Shown here: in pieces, positions 27,101 through 58,890 of the stretch
Layout: each line of letters starts with the position of its first letter
Position numbering within the stretch: the stretch's first letter is position 1
Program-made: the position numbers and the translations under genes
Notes under the pieces: model-generated
Database searches by the model: none
Seen by the model: only the letters and a program-made list of their open reading frames with translations
What the model was told of the DNA's origin: nothing
Assembly (NCBI RefSeq): GCF_011386835.1
Contig: NC_088807.1
Coordinates: 19,344,001-19,408,000 of the forward strand
Direction: 5' to 3'
DNA from: Chrysemys picta bellii
Lineage: Eukaryota
DNA: 64,000 nt

Positions 27101-28028
27101 GGGCCTCATCCTTGTTAGTACGGGGGGGGGGGCATCTTTGTATCTGTCTCTAGCTGGTCAATATCTTTGAAGGCCCCCTGCCAACGTTTAGCTGCTACAG
27201 GGTTTCAGGGGGAGAGGAGGCCTGCAGACTCAGGAAGATGCTGCTGCTTGATAGTGTGGGTGTGACAAACTGAACTGAACCCCCCTAGAGAGTCTTTCTC
27301 TGGGGGGGGGGGGGGAATTTTGCTCTGCCACTTCTGGGGATGAATCCCGGGCATCAGATTCCAACTGATCCCCATGGACCAGCCTCGGTAAAGCCAATCT
27401 GCGTCCCCGGCTGGTGCCCGCTGGTTTGGGGGGAGATCCCAAGACAGGATTTTGGGGGGGGGGGAAATCAGTGGGTGGCTGAAGCTGATGGACAGCCTCT
27501 CCTTTTAATCTCTCTCTCTCTCTGGGTTTCATCTTCACCAGAACCACTCGCTGCCTCTTCCCCGGTCCCGTGACTCGGTGTGAACGGTGCTTCCCTCTTG
27601 CACCAAGTGGGGCAGGGGGCTGAATTAATGGGTGACCTAGAGGGGCCCTAAGATAGCTTGGGGCAGGGGGCCGCACCGGAGCCGATTGCAGACGCTCAAG
27701 TCTGCGCTGCACTTCTTACCATCTAGGGATGCGAGATCTCGGGGCTTAAAGCCAACCTGGACCAGGTGGTGAGAACGCTGGGAAGGGAGGCTGTGGGCCC
27801 GGAAGGGGGCACTCTCCTCTGTCGGTGCTGACCCCAATGCCCCATTGTGCCCGTCCCTGGCACGCTTGGTCCCTGCTTTCCGGGCGTGTGCGATTCTAGA
27901 GTCCGTCAGGCACATCCGCCGGAGCGTAACTGCTGGGCCCCGCTGGTGGGGGTGGGCAGGGGGTGGGCCCCCCCCCGGAGCAGGTTATCACTTGGTCTGT
28001 GACGCGCCTGTGTCCCTCTCTCCTGCAG

Positions 28029-28176
28029 AACTCGAACGTGGAAAACCTGCCGCCCCACGTCATCCGGCTGGTCTACAAGGAGGTCTCCACCCTGACGTCG
28101 GACCCGCCAGAGGGCATCAAGGTCTTCCCCAACGAGGAGGACATCACAGACGTCCAGGTCACCATCGAAGGACCTG
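28029..28176 (+). CDS. UBE2S: UBE2S exon ([19 protein letters not shown]...VTIEGP)
   Basis: 148 nt, ctgcag|...|gtgaga; diagnostic UBE2S N-terminus. Confidence 0.97.
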
Positions 28177-28676
28177 GTGAGATGGGGGTGTGGCTGGCTG
28201 TGTGGGGGCGTGGCTAGTGCCGGTAAGGGGGCGTGGCTTTCATCTGGGGCCTCCCCCCTTGCTAGCTGCCACCTCCCCCACTGTGTTTAATCATTCTGCT
28301 CCTGCCTGAGGCTGGAGGAGTCGGCCTCGTCCCTGAAGAGGGCGCTGTGATTCCTGCTCTGACCCCAGTGTGTCACTGGGGCTGCTGTGCTGGGCGCTCA
28401 GTGGGGGCGCTGTGCTGTAGGGAGCCTGGGGGGCCTCAGGGCAAGCACACACCCTGCCCCCGGCACAGATAGGGCCTTCCTGGGACACGGGGGCCATTCA
28501 TTAAGGTCCCTCCCCAGCCGTGACTTGCTGTCATCTTCCCCTGCAGTCCGGTGCCCCCAGCCTCATGGGGCTGGTCCCCTCCCAGGGGCAAGTTGGGGGT
28601 GGGGATGTATCCCCTGGAGGTGGGGGGCTGGTGCGTGGGAGTGGATCCCTTCTCACCCGCTTTGCTCCCTTGGCAG

Positions 28677-35761: not shown

Positions 35762-36141
35762 ATGGGGAACAGTAAAAGCGGGGCGCTGTCCAAGGAGATT
35801 CTGGAGGACCTGAAGCTCAACACCAAGTACTCGGAGGATGAGCTGTGCAAGTGGTACGAAAGCTTCCAGAAGCAGTGCCCGGACGGGCGCATCAGCCGGG
35901 CCGAGTTCGAGAAGATCTACGGCAACTTCTTCCCAACTCGGACCCCAAGGTCTACGCCCGGCACGTCTTCCGCAGCTTCGACACCAACGACGACGGGACG
36001 CTGGACTTCCGGGAGTACATCATCGCCCTGCACCTCACCTCCTCCGGCAAGACCAACCTCAAGCTGGAGTGGGCCTTCTCCCTCTTCGACGTCGACCGCA
36101 ACGGCGAGATCAGCAAGAGCGAGGTGCTGGAGATCATCACG
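35762..36141 (+). CDS. RCVRN-like: Visinin (recoverin paralogue) exon 1; one base missing at ~35930
   Basis: [12 protein letters not shown] myristoylation motif; EF-hand loops [12 protein letters not shown] and [12 protein letters not shown]. The exon is 380 nt versus the expected 381; adding one C in TTCTTCCC restores FFPNSDP. Confidence 0.95.
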
Positions 36142-36159
36142 GTGAGTCCGGGGCAAGGG

Positions 36160-36680
36160 GTGTGTGCTGTGAGCTTCCTCGCTGCAGTGCCCTGAGGGAG
36201 TGCTGTGAGCCTCCTCACGGCAGTGCCCTGAGGGAGTGCTGCAAGCTTCCCCACAGCAGTGCCCTGAGGGGGTGATGCGAGCCTCCTCACGGCAGTGCCC
36301 TGAGGGAGTGCTGCGAGCCTCCTCATGGCCGTGTCCTGAGGGAGTGCTGCAAGCTTCCCCACAGCAGTGCCCTGAGGGGGTGATGCGAGCTTCCCCACAG
36401 CAGTGCCTTGAGGGGGTGCTGTGAGGTTCCCCGCAGCAGTGCCCTGAGGTGGTGCTGCGAGCTTCCCCACAGCAGTGCCCTAATGGGGTGCTGTGAGCTT
36501 CCCCACAGCAGTGACCTGAGGGGGTGCTGCGAGCTTCCCCACAGCAGTGCCCTGGGGATGGGAAAACAATGTGAGTGCTCCCGCAGCAGTGTCTTGTAGG
36601 AATTTCAGCCCCAGAAGGGCGGGCGGGGGGGGAACAAGGCGTGCTGCAAGCTTCCTTCCCAGCAGTGCCCTGGGGAGGGG
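36160..36680. repeat. ~39-bp minisatellite (GAGCTTCCCCACAGCAGTGCCCTGAGGG)
   Basis: Direct tandem units starting just after the exon 1 donor. Confidence 0.85.
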
Positions 36681-45718: not shown

Positions 45719-46282
45719 CTGGAGACGGGGGAAAGAGCGTGAGGCTGATGCACACTGGAGTGGGGTGCCCCCTGCAAAGGGGAGGGGGGCTACTGCAGGT
45801 ACTGGGCCTCGCTTCCCCACCCCACCTGCACCAGGGGTGCCCGGAGTGGGGCTGCACCCCACTTCTAGAGATCGCCCCTGAAGCTAAATGGGGTGAGGGC
45901 ACTGACCAGACATGGTGAGCTGAGTGACTATCACCCCCACATCACTTCTCACCCATGTGGTGGGAAGGGGGCGCTCAGATTAGGGGGGCGAGACGATCGC
46001 CAATCAATCCCCCCTTTCTAGCGTGATCATCCCCCCACGTGAAGAGAGGGGAGGTCTCCAACCAGGCACGCAGCAGCCACCTGGGTTAAATCCAGAGAAT
46101 CCTGGGTTTAAAATGGAGGTGTGCCGCCCCCACCCCCGATACACCCCCCTCCAAGAGCCAGCCGTGTCCCTTTCTGCCCCTCGGGACGGGCGCTTTGGCC
46201 AATGGGGCAATGCCCCTCCCCCGTGGGTTCCTGAACACAGGACGGCCCCGTTCGGGAAGGGGGGACCAGACCCAGCACTCAC

Positions 46283-46401
46283 CATGCGCAGATCCTTGCG
46301 GTAGTTGTTCTTGCGGATGATGTGACGCAGGCTGTTGAGCGTGGCCCGGGCGTTCTTGTTAATGGTGGTCTTCTCGTAGGACGTGGCTGGCTTGCGCTGG
46401 C
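46283..46401 (-). CDS. RPL28: RPL28 exon ([40 protein letters not shown])
   Basis: 119 nt, ccccag|...|gtgagt. Confidence 0.97.
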
Positions 46402-46686
46402 CTGGGGGAAGGGGCCATGGGTCAGCCAGGGGACGAGCTGGTCTAGTTAGCAGGACAGGACGGGGGCGTTTCCCCTCTAAGGGGCGCCTGCCCCAGGGCA
46501 GGGGACTGGAGGACTCAAGGGGGGTGGGACTGGAGTATGGGGCCTTCCCCCCCCCCCCCCCCCAGGCGGCCCAAGCATCCAAATCTGCCCCCCCCAGAAG
46601 AAATCACTATTTCACACCCCCTGGCTCCCACAATCCTTTGCGGGGGGGGGGGGGGGGGGGGGGGGAGAAGCAGCCTGTCGGCATCA

Positions 46687-47337
<651 letters not shown>

Positions 47338-47341
47338 TCAC

Positions 47342-47423
47342 GGGTGCTGTAGGTTTGTTTGTTCCGCTTGAGGAGGAAGCTGGAGCTGTTGCGGACGATC
47401 ATCCACTGCAGATGGGCCGACAT
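47342..47423 (-). CDS. RPL28: RPL28 first coding exon ([27 protein letters not shown]); one extra C before the donor
   Basis: 82 nt versus the 81 needed for a phase-0 join to GAG CCG. Confidence 0.95.
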
Positions 47424-47449: not shown

Positions 47450-49710
47450 GGGGGGGGGTCCGGGGGGGAGGGGCCGGTCCCGAGGGGGGGTTCGGGGGGC
47501 GCGGGGGGGGTTCGGGAGGGAGGGGCCGGTCCCGAGGGGGGGTTCGGGGGGAGCGCGGGGGGGGTTCGGGAGGGAGGGGCCGGTCCCGGGGGGGGGGTTC
47601 GGGAGGGGTTCGGGAGGGAGGGGCCGGTCCCGAGGGGGGGTTCGGGGGGCGCGGGGGGGGGTTCGGGGGGGAGGGGCCGGTCCCGAGGGGGGTTCGGGGG
47701 AGCGCGGGGGGGTTCGGGAGGGAGGGGCCGGTCCCGAGGGGGGGTTCGGGGGGCGCGGGGGGGGTTCGGGAGGGAGGGGCCGGTCCCGAGGGGGGGTTCG
47801 GGGGACGCGGGGGGGGTTCGGGGGGGGAGGGGCCGGTCCCGAGGGGGGGTTCGGGGGGAGCGCGGGGGGGTTCGGGAGGGAGGGGGCCGGTCCCGAGGGG
47901 GGGTTCGGGGGGCGCGGGGGGGGGTTCGGGAGGGAGGGGCCGGTCCCATGGGGGGGTTCGGGGGGCGCGGGGGGGGGTTCGGGAGGGAGGGGCCGGTCCC
48001 ATGGGGGGGTTCGGGGGGCGCGGGGGGGGTTCGGGAGGGAGGGGCCGGTCCCGAGGGGGGGTTCGGGGGGCGCGGGGGGGGTTCGGGGGGGAGGGGCCGG
48101 TCCCGAGGGGGGGTTCGGGGGGAGCGCGGGGGGGTTCGGGAGGGAGGGGCCGGTCCCGAGGGGGGGTTCGGGGGGCGCGGGGGGGGTTCGGGAGGGAGGG
48201 GCCGGTCCCGAGGGGGGGTTCGGGGGGCGCGGGGGGGGTTCGGGGGGGAGGGGCCGGTCCCATGGGGGGGTTCGGGGGGCGCGGGGGGGGTTCGGGGGGG
48301 GAGGGGCCGGTCCCGAGGGGGGGTTCGGGGGGAGCGCGGGGGGGTTCGGGAGGGAGGGGCCGGTCCCGAGGGGGGGTTCGGGGGGAGCGCGGGGGGGTTC
48401 GGGAGGGAGGGGCCGGTCCCGAGGGGGGGTTCGGGGGGCGCGGGGGGGGTTCGGGGGGGAGGGGCCGGTCCCGAGGGGGGGTTCGGGGGGAGCGCGGGGG
48501 GGGTTCGGGAGGGAGGGGCCGGTCCCGAGGGGGGGTTCGGGGGGAGCGCGGGGGGGGTTCGGGAGGGAGGGGCCGGTCCCATGGGGGGGTTCGGGGGGCG
48601 CGGGGGGGTTCGGGGGGGAGGGGCCGGTCCCGAGGGGGGGTTCGGGGGGAGCGCGGGGGGTTCGGGAGGGAGGGGCCGGTCCCGAGGGGGGGGTTCGGGG
48701 GGCGCGGGGGGGGTTCGGGGGGGAGGGGCCGGTCCCGAGGGGGGGTTCGGGGGGAGCGCGGGGGGGTTCGGGAGGGAGGGGCCGGTCCCATGGGGGGGTT
48801 CGGGGGGCGCGGGGGGGGGTTCGGGGGGGGAGGGGCCGGTCCCGAGGGGGGGTTCGGGGGGAGCGCGGGGGGGTTCGGGAGGGAGGGGCCGGTCCCGAGG
48901 GGGGGTTCGGGGGGAGCGCGGGGGGGTTCGGGAGGGAGGGGCCGGTCCCATGGGGGGGTTCGGGGGGCGCGGGTGGGGGTTCGGGGGGGAGGGGGCCGGT
49001 CCCGAGGGGGGGGTTCGGGGGGAGCGCGGGGGGGTTCGGGAGGGAGGGGGCCGGTCCCATGGGGGGGTTCGGGGGGCGCGGGGGGGGTTCGGGGGGGAGG
49101 GGCCGGTCCCGAGGGGGGGTTCGGGGGGAGCGCGGGGGGGTTCGGGAGGGAGGGGCCGGTCCCGAGGGGGGGGTTCGGGGGGGCGCGGGGGGGTTCGGGA
49201 GGGAGGGGCCGGTCCCGAGGGGGGGTTCGGGGGGCGCGGGGGGGGTTCGGGGGGGGAGGGGGCCGGTCCCGAGGGGGGGGTTCGGGGGGAGCGCGGGGGG
49301 GTTCGGGAGGGAGGGGCCGGTCCCATGGGGGGGTTCGGGGGGCGCGGGGGGGGGTTCGGGGGGGAGGGGCCGGTCCCGAGGGGGGGTTCGGGGGGAGCGC
49401 GGGGGGGTTCGGGAGGGAGGGGCCGGTCCCGAGGGGGGGTTCGGGGGGCGCGGGGGGGGTTCGGGGGGAGGGGGCCGGTCCCGAGGGGGGGTTCGGGGGG
49501 AGCGCGGGGGGGTTCGGGAGGGAGGGGCCGGTCCCGAGGGGGGGTTCGGGGGGCGCGGGGGGGGTTCGGGGGGGAGGGGCCGGTCCCGAGGGGGGGTTCG
49601 GGGGGCGCGGGGGGGGATTCGGGGAGGGAGGGGCCGGTCCCGAGGGGGGGGGCGCGGCGGGGGGATTCGGGGAGGGAGGGGCCGGTCCCGAGGGGGGGTT
49701 CGGGGGGGTC
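47450..49710. repeat. ~2.2 kb extremely G-rich ~48-bp minisatellite filling RPL28 intron 1
   Basis: GGGGGGTTCGGGAGGGAGGGGCCGGTCCCGAGGGGGGGTTCGGGGGGCGC units. Confidence 0.95.
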
Positions 49711-49747: not shown

Positions 49748-49785
49748 CTGCTCTCGCGGCCGCTGCCGGAAACGGAAAGGGAGGA
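49748..49785 (-). promoter_or_regulatory. RPL28: RPL28 non-coding exon 1 with 5'TOP tract
   Basis: Minus strand reads TTCCTCCCTTTCCGTTTCCGGCAGCGGCCGCGAGAGCAG|gtatcg. Confidence 0.8.
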
Positions 49786-49990: not shown

Positions 49991-50683
49991 TCGGACACAT
50001 TCGGCTCCGCTCGGCTCTTTCCGGCGCTAGCCCCCCTTTCCCCACCCACATCAAAGCGGGGATGTGTGTAAATCTTTCCTCGCCCCGGGCGCGGCCCGCC
50101 CCAGGGCTCCCCCAGCGGCCCCTGCAGCCCAGGGACCAGGCACCTGCCCCCCCCCCTCCACAGCAACGTCCCCCCAGTTGGCGGGGGGTGGGTGAGGTTT
50201 TTGACTCCCAATATATATTTCTATTAGGTGTATTGCGGTAGTCCTGGGAGCTAGGCGCTGTTCATTGTTCATTCGGTGTATTACAGTAGCGCCCAGTCAT
50301 GGCCCCTTGGTGCACGGTGCTGTACATGACGGTAGCACCATGTCACATTTTTTCCATTTCCCTGTGACTTTTTTCTTCTGGCTCATTAGTGATCACTGAG
50401 GGGCTGAGGGTCGGGAGTGAGGGGCACCGGCAGAGCTGGGGGGAGCCCAGGGCCGGGGTAGCAGGGGGCTGCGGGTCGGGAGTGAGGGGCACCGGCAGAG
50501 CTGGGGGCTAGCAGGGGGCTGTGGGTCAGCAGTGAGGAGCACCGTTCATTGAGCCAGTTGCGGGGGCTGGTAATTAACAAGCCCCAGGGGGTGCATTGAT
50601 CGGGGCTGGCGCGCAGGCCGGGGATCGATGGGGCGCGGGGCTGGCTCCGGTGTTCAGTCGGGACGGGGCCGTGGGCGGGCGGG

Positions 50684-50861
50684 ATGGGGCTGTGGGGGGC
50701 CCTGGTGCTGCTGGCCCTGCTGGGGGGCGGGGGGCGCCCCTTCGAGCTGCAGGAGGCCATCCGGGAGCTGCAGAGCGAGAACGCCCAGCTGCAGGGCCGG
50801 GTTCAGAACCTGAGCCAGGCCCTGGGCGAGCTGCGTCTGCTCGTCTGGAACCGCTCGCGGG
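50684..50861 (+). CDS. Unrecognised gene exon 1: signal-peptide-like N-terminus plus five-heptad leucine zipper
   Basis: MGLWGALVLLALLGGGGRPFELQEAIRELQSENAQLQGRVQNLSQALGELRLLVWNRSR. Nearly all codons end in G/C; in-frame TGA upstream at 50597; donor G|gtgagc. Confidence 0.8.
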
Positions 50862-51747
50862 GTGAGCTGGGGATGGGGATGGGGTGGGGCCTAGGGACCA
50901 GCCCCCTCCCGGGTGCAGAGCCCCCGTTCCTGGGTGCAGAGCCCCCATCCCGTGACACCCCCCCTGAGAGCATAGCACCCTCCGGGTTCAGAGCCCCCCC
51001 CCCGGCATCAGAGCCCCCCTCCTAGGGTCCCCTAACAGCAGAGCCAACCCCCCTCCCAGGGTGCAGACCCCCCCAATGCATATCCCCCACAGGCCCCCCC
51101 CCCCCGAGAACAGAGCATCTGCACCATTGAGAGTAGCCCCCCCAGAATAGAAACCCCCTTTTCTGAAACAAGACTCCCCCAAACCAGTGACCCAACCCCA
51201 GAGACCCCCCTTTGAGATCAGTGACCCCCCCACCCACGTCCCCTTCCCCCCAAGACTGGGACCCCCTTAGACCAGAGACCCCCCCTTCACTCCTTCTGTC
51301 CCACTCCCCCAGACTGGACACCAGCTCAGGGGACCCCAAACCTGGAGCAGGGTAGGGGGGGGCTCCGTCATCCATCCCTCGACTTCTCTGCTGGGGGGGG
51401 GGCTGTCAGTGCCTGGGAGGGGCCTGTTTGAGAACTAGGCTGAGGCCCCCCAAATTCATCACACATACGTAGCCATCAGGCCATGACTGATCTGGGCTGG
51501 GTTGGGAGATCAACTGGACCCTTGGCTCGGGGGGGTGGACGAGGGGTGGTGGTGTCTAGTGGGTTAGAGTGGGGGTGAGGCTGGGAGCCAGGACTCCTGG
51601 GTTCTCTCCCCTGCTCTGGGAGGGGAGTGGGGTCTAGTGGCTGGAGCAGAGGAGGGGCTGGGAGCCAGGACTCCTGGGTTCCGTCCCTGGCTCGGGGGTG
51701 GGGGACGTGGTTAGAGCGCCTCTGATTCCCCTCTGTCCTCCCCCCAG

Positions 51748-51908
51748 ATTCAGGAGCTGCGCCCGAGCACCTACTCCATGACCACCTGCCCTGCCGGCCG
51801 GACCCGCCCCACGGCCGCAGCGCTGCCCCCCAACTCCACGTACCCTGCCTAGGGCTGCTGGGGGCGCTGGCCCTGCGCAGCCCCCTCCTGCTGCTGGCGG
51901 GGGACTGA
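51748..51908 (+). CDS. Unrecognised gene exon 2: linker plus GPI-signal-like hydrophobic tail
   Basis: Pyrimidine tract and cag|AT, phase-compatible with exon 1; DSGAAPEHLLHDHLPCRPDPPHGRSAAPQLHVPCLGLLGALALRSPLLLLAGD*; AATAAA at 52059-52064. Confidence 0.7.
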
Positions 51909-52379
51909 GACACCGCGTGCCCCTGGCTGTGTGTGTGGGGGGGGCGACTGCCCCCCACCCTGTTAGAACCCTGAGGAGCAAAGAACAATGAGGGGAGGGG
52001 CTGGAGTTGGGACAGATTTGGGGTGGCAAATCCCCCCCTCACCCTACAGCCCTGCAAAAATAAACAGCCTGGGGCAACATGGATGAGGCTGGGCTCGTGT
52101 TTTGTGGTGCCGGGTTCCCCGCTGCCCCCCCCCCCCCCCCCGTGTCCCAGCTCCTCCCCCGTCCCCGTCAGTTGATTAGCTGCCGCTGCTAATTGTGTCA
52201 TTAAGCAGCAGGGGCTGAGGTGGGGCTGCAGCTAATGTGGGTCATTCGATGGGCTTTTTCCATCCCGCCCCCCCCCCCAGTGCGGGCCCAGAACCCCCGG
52301 GGGCGGCGGGGGCTGAGCAGGGAGCGGGAAGGAGCAAATTTGTAACTGCAACACATGGTAGCAATGGGGGCCTGAGCCT

Positions 52380-53250
52380 GGGAGCCTCCCAGAGCCGGGG
52401 GGAGAACCCAGGAGTCCTGGCTCCCAGCCCCCCCCCCCCACGCTCTAACCACTAGACCCCCCCCCCTCCCCTCCCTGAGCCAGGGAGAGAACCCAGGAGT
52501 CCTGGCTCCCAGCTCCCCCTGCTCTAACCACTAGACCCCCCCTCCTCTCCCCTCCCTGAGCCAGGGAGAGAACCCAGGAGTCCGGGCTCCCAGCCCCCCC
52601 TGCTCTAACCACTAGACCCCCCTCCTCTCCCCACCCTGAGCCAGGGAGAGAACCCAGGAGTCCGGGCTCCCAGCCCCCCCTGCTCTAACCACTAGACCCC
52701 CCCCCTCCTCTCCCCTCCCAGAGCCAGGGAGAGAACCCAGGAGTCCGGGCTCCCAGCTCCCCCCCGCTCTAGCCACTGGACCCCCCCTCCTCTCCCCACC
52801 CTGAGCCAGGGAGAGAACCCAGGAGTCTGGGCTCCCAGCCCCCCCTGCTCTAACCACTAGACCCCCCTCCTCTCCCCTCCCTGAGCCAGGGAGAGAACCC
52901 AGGAGTCCGGGCTCCCAGCCCCCCCTGCTCTAACCACTAGACCCCCCTCCTCTCCCCACCCTGAGCCAGGGAGAGAACCCAGGAGTCCGGGCTCCCAGCC
53001 CCCTCTGCTCTAACCACTAGACCCCCCCTCCTCTCCCCTCCCAGAGCCAGGGAGAGAACCCAGGAGTCCGGGCTCCCAGCCCCCCCTGCTCTAACCACTA
53101 GACCCCCCCCTCCTCTCCCCTCCCAGAGCCAGGGAGAGAACCCAGGAGTCCGGGCTCCCAGCTCCCCCCCGCTCTAACCACTGGACCCCCCTCCTCTCCC
53201 CCACCCTGAGCCAGGGAGAGAACCCAGGAGTCTGGGCTCCCAGCCCCCCC
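52380..53250 (-). repeat. Long tandem array of tRNA/SINE-like monomers
   Basis: GAGCCAGGGAGAGAACCCAGGAGTCC...GCTCTAACCACTAGACCCC units of ~60-62 bp. Confidence 0.85.
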
Positions 53251-53547
53251 CCCACTTCCTGTCCCACTGCTCAGCCTCTCTCCTCTAATTACTTCCCTGT
53301 GTTTAAATCTCCCCTGGCCTCCCGGGCTTTAGGGGAAATGCTCTGGCTCCCTGACATGTTGATCTTAATGAAAGGAACATGCCAGGCAGTGCTTTGCTGC
53401 CAGCTGGGCCCTAATCCCCTGGGATTTCAGCCCTCAGCTCGAGGGGGGGGCTGGGTTCCCCCGTTAACTCTGCCCTCCACTGCCCAGCCTGGATGGGAGC
53501 TGGCGCCCCCTGGAGGGGAAAGGCCCCGAGCCCCATTCCCTGCCCCC

Positions 53548-58736: not shown

Positions 58737-58890
58737 GGGTGCTGTGGCTGTCGGTGGCGTCGGAGTTCCTGTACATCGTCCTGCTCAGCGTCGGCTTCGT
58801 GCTCATGGGGACTGGACGCCACCTGCTACGCAGACTTCATCGCCGGGCTCAAGATCAACGCCTTCGCCGCGGTGATCACCGTGCTGTCGG
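58737..58890 (+). CDS. GSG1-like: GSG1-family exon 3 ([51 protein letters not shown]); one extra base at ~58808
   Basis: 154 nt versus a frame-preserving 153; TM2 and TM3 with the GLKxNAFAAV motif. Confidence 0.9.

Follow-up and report, generated by a model that had tools for sequence, protein, structure and literature searches.

What is the small gene that lies beside RPL28 in the turtle Chrysemys picta bellii, and what kind of protein would it make? The stretch of DNA analysed here, referred to as the window, comprises 64,000 nucleotides of contig NC_088807.1 (assembly GCF_011386835.1, positions 19,344,001 to 19,408,000 of the forward strand). A first-pass annotation, made from the letters of the window, had described at positions 50684-52064 an unrecognised two-exon gene encoding a signal peptide, an extracellular leucine zipper and a signal for a glycosylphosphatidylinositol (GPI) anchor, in a layout resembling that of tetherin. 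The gene is a member of an ancient and unnamed family of protein-coding genes of jawed vertebrates that is located beside RPL28, and we are nearly certain that neither the gene nor the family is an artefact. The word unrecognised holds for this genome, from which no near-identical protein was returned; it does not hold elsewhere, as relatives have been deposited as hypothetical proteins. For the product, we favour, with a probability of about 0.6 for the whole chain of steps, a cleaved signal peptide followed by a glycosylated, probably disulfide-linked, parallel zipper dimer that would be held on the membrane by GPI. The first option offered in the first pass, a GPI-anchored dimeric surface microprotein, is thus the best reading of the gene.

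The open reading frame, its codon bias, its splice sites and its polyadenylation signal were all present as claimed. On the plus strand, an ATG at 50684 opens a coding exon of 178 nt (50684..50861) that ends with GGG|GTGAGC at 50861. It is followed by a phase 1 GT..AG intron of 886 nt (50862..51747), which holds copies of a turtle short interspersed element (SINE) and ends with CCCCCCAG, and by the coding part of exon 2 (51748..51908), with the TGA stop at 51906-51908. The 3' untranslated region (3' UTR, 51909..52090) contains an AATAAA at 52059-52064. Once joined, the coding sequence (CDS) is 339 nt long and specifies 112 amino acids, with a GC content of 0.88 at third codon positions (GC3) against 0.48 at second positions (GC2). 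Codons 1-17 (50684-50734) form a signal-peptide-like segment and codons 19-58, in exon 1, a leucine zipper, the heptads of which had been numbered correctly, with L22, L29, L36, L43 and L50 at position 'd' and I26, N33, V40, L47 and V54 at position 'a'. The translation also contains the sequons N42-L-S (50807-50815) and N56-R-S (50849-50857), the motif E66-H-L-L-H-D-H-L-P-C75 (51765-51794), the candidate omega site S84-A-A (51819-51827) and a hydrophobic tail formed by codons 93-112 (51846-51905).

The structure of the gene was compared with transcript contigs from four runs belonging to four studies and carrying two turtle labels (the kind of these runs, RNA, is the guess of the tool). One contig in each run carries the splice from 50860/1 to 51747/8, with GT..AG borders and 886 nt skipped, and the junction predicted between 50861 and 51748 was therefore observed exactly in all four; within exon 1, contigs cover 50724-50860. 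For exon 2 and the 3' UTR, 0.41-0.56 of the sampled words were found in many small assemblies from seven studies with two organism labels. In the same assemblies, the share for the whole 1.5-kb stretch was just 0.12-0.16, which is the level expected from exon-only coverage. Small assemblies carrying the joined form devoid of intron point to an RNA source, as they are otherwise hard to explain. The run of six C at 51826-51831 had been singled out as a place where the loss of one letter would remove the hydrophobic tail; the four transcript contigs contain zero indels in 51748-51908, the run is intact and the tail is therefore in frame. Within the CDS, the contigs depart from the window at just a few positions (50806 G>A, synonymous; 51819 A>G, giving S84G; 51841-2, giving V91A), and S84G still leaves a small residue at the candidate omega site. 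Over the 180-nt 3' UTR, the contigs differ from the window by about 7 substitutions plus indels; they stop at ~52087-52112, shortly 3' of the AATAAA. The SINE copies of the intron (51540-51700) attract a very high contig depth from unrelated transcripts.

Comparison with the sea turtle Lepidochelys (L. kempii for exon 1) revealed where the sequence is constrained. Divergence amounts to 11.8% upstream of the gene, 10.0% in the intron and 13.7% in the 3' UTR, compared with 1.7% in the coding part of exon 1, with one replacement (R18C), and 7.5% in that of exon 2. The first third of exon 2, through C75-R-P-D, shows zero amino-acid changes relative to Lepidochelys; the changes of exon 2, and one in-frame indel of 18 nt relative to sea turtles, are clustered in the tail, which changes fast with its indels in frame and its hydrophobicity kept. 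Between the skink and the window, the 39 codons starting at F20 differ at 8, 3 and 15 first, second and third codon positions, respectively. This pattern is that of a coding gene with a constrained mature part and a C-terminal signal in which just hydrophobicity is needed; a tail that evolves fast and stays hydrophobic is the usual behaviour of GPI signals.

Relatives were collected by successive searches. A word-indexed search with exon 1 returned 118-residue proteins of Lepidochelys and Eretmochelys and a 106-residue protein of Caretta, all unnamed products, as well as a protein of the Komodo dragon misnamed DnaK; a second search returned skink and gecko proteins of 109-110 residues with a layout matching end to end. 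An exhaustive profile search yielded 47 proteins at E<=1e-3, including those of a frog (Ascaphus), the bamboo shark and many teleosts, and a further profile search yielded 67 at the same threshold; a parrot protein (Neopsephotus, misnamed KCNH4-like) is also a member. In total, the profile searches gave about 65 relatives, spread over sharks, many teleosts, frogs, squamates, sea turtles and a parrot. The family profile, built from turtle sequences including the window's own, recovers the skink protein with an E value of 1e-53, the frog protein with 4e-15, a teleost protein with 8e-9 and the shark protein with 9e-8. The search for homologues and synteny across vertebrates suggested in the first pass thus gave relatives from shark to bird with RPL28 kept as a neighbour. 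Their names in the source records are all 'hypothetical', 'uncharacterized' or plain misnomers. When Pfam was searched with 6 and then 39 sequences, no family reached the threshold and generic coiled-coil models scored weakly, and a search with six RefSeq LOC identifiers together with a keyword search of the literature found no relevant paper on the family. A look-alike search of the ESM Atlas with the perch member gave no usable match. Neither profile search returned a mammalian member, which means only that none is annotated and detectable.

Several of these relatives are misannotated (P0003, P0004, P0042, P0065 and P0078). An annotation error removed 12 zipper residues from the Caretta model, and in the Komodo model, 'Chaperone protein DnaK', the second half is unrelated and, on visual inspection, resembles sequence derived from a transposon; the remaining misnomers are the parrot 'KCNH4-like', the Lates 'histidine-rich glycoprotein-like' and the Dissostichus 'Fucolectin-2'. 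Zebrafish and other teleosts carry the family. Two paralogue types are found in teleosts, FELQDTIH... and YELQDTIH... (for instance in Etheostoma, L003, and Epinephelus, L008), which probably arose in the teleost genome duplication. The FELQDTIH... type lies beside RPL28 near PTGS/PDCL and SEC16, and the YELQDTIH... type has as neighbours a peptidase M16 gene and a large gene with Ig domains; in Scomber, the annotation fuses the latter type to PTGS1. An exact-sequence look-up of a Chaetodon paralogue gave no record.

Gene order and intron position were compared between lineages. In the window, the exons of RPL28 (46220-47423, minus strand) are followed by the gene (from 50684, plus strand) and by a gene of the GSG-1 family (from 57411, plus strand). 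Lepidochelys has the same order, with an EF-hand gene, RPL28 on the minus strand, and the gene and the GSG-1 family gene on the plus strand. In the skink, RPL28 on the minus strand is followed by the gene and then by a gene matching the GSG-1 neighbour of the window, in the parrot, the gene is accompanied by RPL28 and the EF-hand gene, and in shark and perch RPL28 is directly upstream on the same strand as the gene. The gene thus lies beside RPL28 in the window, shark, perch, skink, sea turtle and parrot. A phase 1 intron placed straight after W-x-x-S, where the zipper ends, is shared by the window with Lepidochelys, Lerista, parrot, Ascaphus and shark; the coding sequence of teleosts is longer, and that of perch did not agree with a model of two exons. 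Exon 1 of the downstream neighbour belongs to the GSG-1 family (Pfam E 1.4e-37). The Pfam model of TMEM238, cited in the first pass as the unrelated human gene at this position, matched neither the gene nor the exons of this neighbour.

Among 39 full-length members, residues L22, L29, N33, L36, L47 and C75 are invariant and E32, N42, L43, T44, A46, L50 and H67 are near-invariant. Two predicted features are thereby upheld across the family, the GCN4-like zipper with its Asn at position 'a' and the N-L-S/T sequon at N42, which is nearly invariant. The conserved F/Y-E-L-Q start is preceded by 17-23 residues in well-annotated members, with a hydrophobic core of 9-13 residues and G/S/A at positions -3/-1 across the family. 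Judged by its sequence, the N-terminus has the geometry of a signal peptide, as proposed, and not that of a signal anchor. AlphaFold2, run on the family alignment, predicts one long helix at 19-60, with block means of the predicted local distance difference test (pLDDT) of 90-98 for residues 21-60, followed by a linker with pLDDT <50 at 80-90 and by a C-terminal hydrophobic helix.

In a profile search of the PDB, the best match was to dimeric bZIP zippers (C/EBP beta, E 0.0015, sub-significant), and the 51 matches at E<=10 consisted of bZIP and designed zippers only; the Pfam models bZIP_1 and bZIP_2 matched the zipper only, below the cut-off. The family shares with the zippers of C/EBP beta and GCN4 a Leu at 'd' and beta-branched residues or Leu at 'a', where a single Asn is also buried. 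In GCN4 variants, this combination favours parallel dimers. The family differs from bZIP proteins in that it would be extracellular, glycosylated and lipid-anchored, and in that it has no basic DNA-binding region, the zipper coming straight after the signal peptide. The likeness is one of coiled-coil type and not of descent. A homodimer prediction with two copies of residues 18-85 of P0001 gave a score of 0.32, compared with 0.34 for the control, and counts neither for nor against dimerisation.

At the other end of the protein, the pattern of omega site and hydrophobic tail recognised in the window recurs in the C-termini of the family. Teleost proteins have C-G-H-D-L-H-G-S-A-A-P, a spacer of ~8 polar residues and 14-17 hydrophobic residues reaching the last residue; turtle proteins have C-R-P-D-P-P-H-G-R-S-A-A-P, a spacer and the tail; squamate proteins have R-N-T-G or R-N-I-A, a spacer and just ~13-14 hydrophobic residues. 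In most lineages, 27-28 residues separate the small-residue triplet from the C-terminus. Inspection of the sequences found every element of the GPI class, namely signal peptide, omega site, spacer, terminal hydrophobic stretch and absence of a cytoplasmic tail. The C-terminus accordingly has the form of a classical GPI attachment signal, the squamate tail being too short for a membrane span. Close to the membrane, the motif [ET]-H-L-L-x-[ED]-H-x-x-C has stayed conserved between teleosts and turtles; the two His and the invariant Cys that it contains suggest a possible disulfide, and a sensitivity of the motif to metal or pH would be speculation.

The reading that we favour can be stated as a series of steps. 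The signal peptide would be cleaved co-translationally after ~17 residues, and the mature chain would start 1-3 residues before FELQ. Residues ~20-58 would then form a parallel, in-register, two-stranded leucine zipper, a dimer being expected from the all-Leu 'd' positions, the I/N/V/L/V 'a' positions and the invariant buried Asn33, as this pattern specifies in GCN4-type zippers. An N-glycan may be added at the near-invariant N42-L-S/T, plus one at N56 in reptiles, and an interchain C75-C75 disulfide may lock the dimer. Cleavage at the small-residue site, which is S84-A-A in the turtle and G-S-A-A in teleosts, would remove the hydrophobic tail, and the chain would be transferred to GPI. The expected product is a short rigid rod on the outer face of the cell, a glycosylated dimer of ~65 residues per chain that carries two lipid anchors and lacks a globular domain. 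Its most likely mode of action would be to bind a partner, using the exposed conserved residues of the zipper and the His-rich motif close to the membrane. CD52 and CD24 are very small GPI-anchored glycopeptides devoid of a globular domain, and the family would resemble them in having a tiny glycosylated mature chain held by GPI alone. They are, however, unstructured mucin-like peptides, in contrast to the ordered and strongly conserved zipper dimer predicted here.

A number of observations weigh against a glycosylated zipper dimer held by GPI. Firstly, the transcript 5' end, including the start codon, rests on conservation and not on RNA. In the two contigs that extend furthest 5' (runs X3 and X12, one turtle label), the sequence 5' of 50724, with the start and signal-peptide codons, is not aligned and 77 or 100 unmatched letters precede 50724; one of these contigs matches 50125-50302, continues with 77 unmatched letters and then follows the window from 50724. 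This mismatch over 50125-50723 may reflect a taxon-specific structure or sequence of the 5' exon, or skipping of a G-rich stretch by the aligner. Secondly, the tail of sea turtles, with 24-26 residues, is long enough to span a membrane, and that of the window includes one Arg and one Pro. Thirdly, in a relative found on a Logan contig of SRR18112698 (L007, ~719-1650), where the gene is followed by a GSG-1 family gene, exon 2 (…SAEHLHRSRTPCHLDTPHPSAAPHPGTPHLGLLGGALLLGALAVHAALW…), located by eye only in a noisy tblastn output, seems to continue ~50 residues past the hydrophobic stretch; it could be a real transmembrane variant or a sequence error. Finally, every step from signal cleavage through glycosylation, dimerisation and disulfide formation to GPI attachment is one that we infer from sequence.

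The sea-turtle tails, the helix that AlphaFold2 models over residues 92-116 and the apparent extension of L007 would all suit a type I single-pass protein, in which the signal is cleaved and the zipper ectodomain dimerises as above, the C-terminal transmembrane helix is kept and almost no cytoplasmic tail is present. We regard such a protein as possible and unlikely. The hydrophobic stretch of squamates is too short for it, and the tails end at the last residue or 2-5 residues from it, with no basic stop-transfer cluster. Furthermore, the small-residue triplet is conserved at 27-28 residues from the end, and it is the region of this triplet, not the poorly conserved sequence of the tail, that has been maintained.

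A secreted, soluble coiled-coil peptide, PLAC9-like or hormone-like, with a C-terminal part that is a propeptide or is not inserted into the membrane, would agree with the small size, the signal peptide and the single helix. The first-pass annotation had also observed a faint resemblance to PLAC9, W-N ... A-P-[DE]-x-L, and PLAC9 (Pfam family PF15205) is likewise a short protein of vertebrates, in which a signal peptide is accompanied by a helical segment ending in W-N. The resemblance did not withstand the profile comparison, in which the matches listed for the scanned members at E<=10 did not include PLAC9, bearing in mind that HMMER filters can drop very weak matches; PLAC9 is also not known to have a conserved Cys or a hydrophobic tail at its C-terminus. 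Conserved dibasic processing sites are absent from the family, and the terminal hydrophobic stretch, which a soluble product would not need, is present in every lineage from shark to bird. A secreted peptide is thus improbable.

The second option of the first-pass annotation was a tether of the tetherin type, in which an N-terminal signal anchor is left uncleaved and, with a C-terminal GPI, allows the dimer to bridge two membranes. The C-terminal half of the protein does resemble that of BST2/tetherin, with an extracellular, N-glycosylated, parallel dimeric coiled coil, Cys for interchain disulfides and a GPI-type signal, all as predicted here; BST2 is defined by layout more than by sequence. 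The N-terminal half is different. BST2 has a cytoplasmic tail and a type II transmembrane anchor, and inspection of the family found in their place a short signal peptide of the cleavable type and no conserved cytoplasmic tail; the double anchor is unsupported because the N-terminus, with 17-23 residues before FELQ and its short core, is signal-peptide-like. The zipper covers ~40 residues compared with ~100 in BST2, and the gene is flanked by RPL28 and a GSG-1 family gene and not by PLVAP. The list of Pfam matches at E<=10 contains no BST2 family, and the 51 PDB matches contain no BST2 chain. No conserved interferon-response element was found in the family: the sole match, GAAACGGAAAG at 49769, also occurs in Lepidochelys, ~165 nt from the annotated 5' end of RPL28, and in none of the other lineages compared, so that it is turtle-specific and sits beside the RPL28 promoter. 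The antiviral analogy with tetherin is weak and a double anchor very improbable.

The N-terminal extension that such a tether would need was sought upstream. An ATG at 50628..50630 had been proposed as the source of a basic cytoplasmic tail if an indel were present. This codon is 56 nt upstream and out of frame (-56), and its spacing is identical, with no indel in between, in the assemblies of the window and Lepidochelys; the extension was therefore rejected. In two skinks, translation from an upstream ATG that is in frame would give a basic N-terminal extension, an observation in favour of a double anchor. Of these skink codons, the one at -120 overlaps and sits 5' of a promoter-like element (AATTAACAAGC..ATTGAT) common to skink and turtles, and is for that reason probably untranscribed. 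In the window, the element (TAATTAACAAGC ... ATTGAT) is found at 50571..50600 on the plus strand, ~110 nt before the ATG; its position is -113/-114 in the window and Lepidochelys and -110 in the skink Lerista (CAATTAACAAGC..ATTGAT), and it probably belongs to the proximal promoter. As for a chance open reading frame on a non-coding transcript, which the 67% GC of the region and its many long stop-free frames could produce, it is effectively refuted by protein conservation over ~450 million years, together with intron phase, synteny and codon-position bias.

Other features of the window were noted. Most of the intergenic space between RPL28 and the gene is filled by a G-rich minisatellite (47451-49707, ~43 copies of a 53-bp unit, GC ~0.83), which is lineage-specific, as the corresponding interval of Lepidochelys is just ~1.1 kb. 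Right downstream of the gene, 52385-53253 consists of tandem ~80-bp units from a common turtle SINE (GGGAGCCAGGACTCCTGGGTTC...). Further genes of the window include an exon of a UBE2S-like E2 (27930-28214, plus strand; weak UQ_con match) and an exon of a recoverin/visinin-like EF-hand gene (35842-36192, plus strand); the order EF-hand gene, RPL28, gene is common to the window, sea turtle and parrot. In an exon of the GSG-1 family gene, 58808-58812 reads ATGGGGACTGGAC in the window and ATGGGC-CTGGAC in Lepidochelys; this excess of one base, also apparent on comparison with the skink, puts ...GFVLM and LDATCYADF... in different frames, and reflects either an assembly error or a disabled copy of the gene.

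Each part of the predicted protein is of a known kind, and their combination, a signal peptide, a zipper and a GPI signal, appears undescribed as a conserved stand-alone family; a bare leucine zipper on a GPI anchor would be an unusual layout. Few families that extend from sharks to birds have escaped study until now, and for this one no Pfam model, name or paper was found. Owing to its small size, the gene can be missed or misnamed by annotation, and it was absent from the protein set of this turtle in the searches made. We also raise a bolder and fairly improbable proposal, that the family constitutes an undescribed ancient surface device of vertebrates, a doubly lipid-anchored, disulfide-locked zipper rod of minimal size with a conserved His/Cys motif close to the membrane, located beside RPL28 for ~450 million years and lost or unrecognisably changed in mammals. 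If true, the rod could act in trans as a 'zipper' between cells or between cells and particles, for instance in a tetherin-like retention through lipid anchors alone; alternatively, a pathway for which mammals have another solution could require it as an obligate co-receptor or ligand. The apparent absence of the family from annotated mammalian proteomes poses a clear evolutionary question, and its presence in zebrafish and other teleosts makes the family easy to test.

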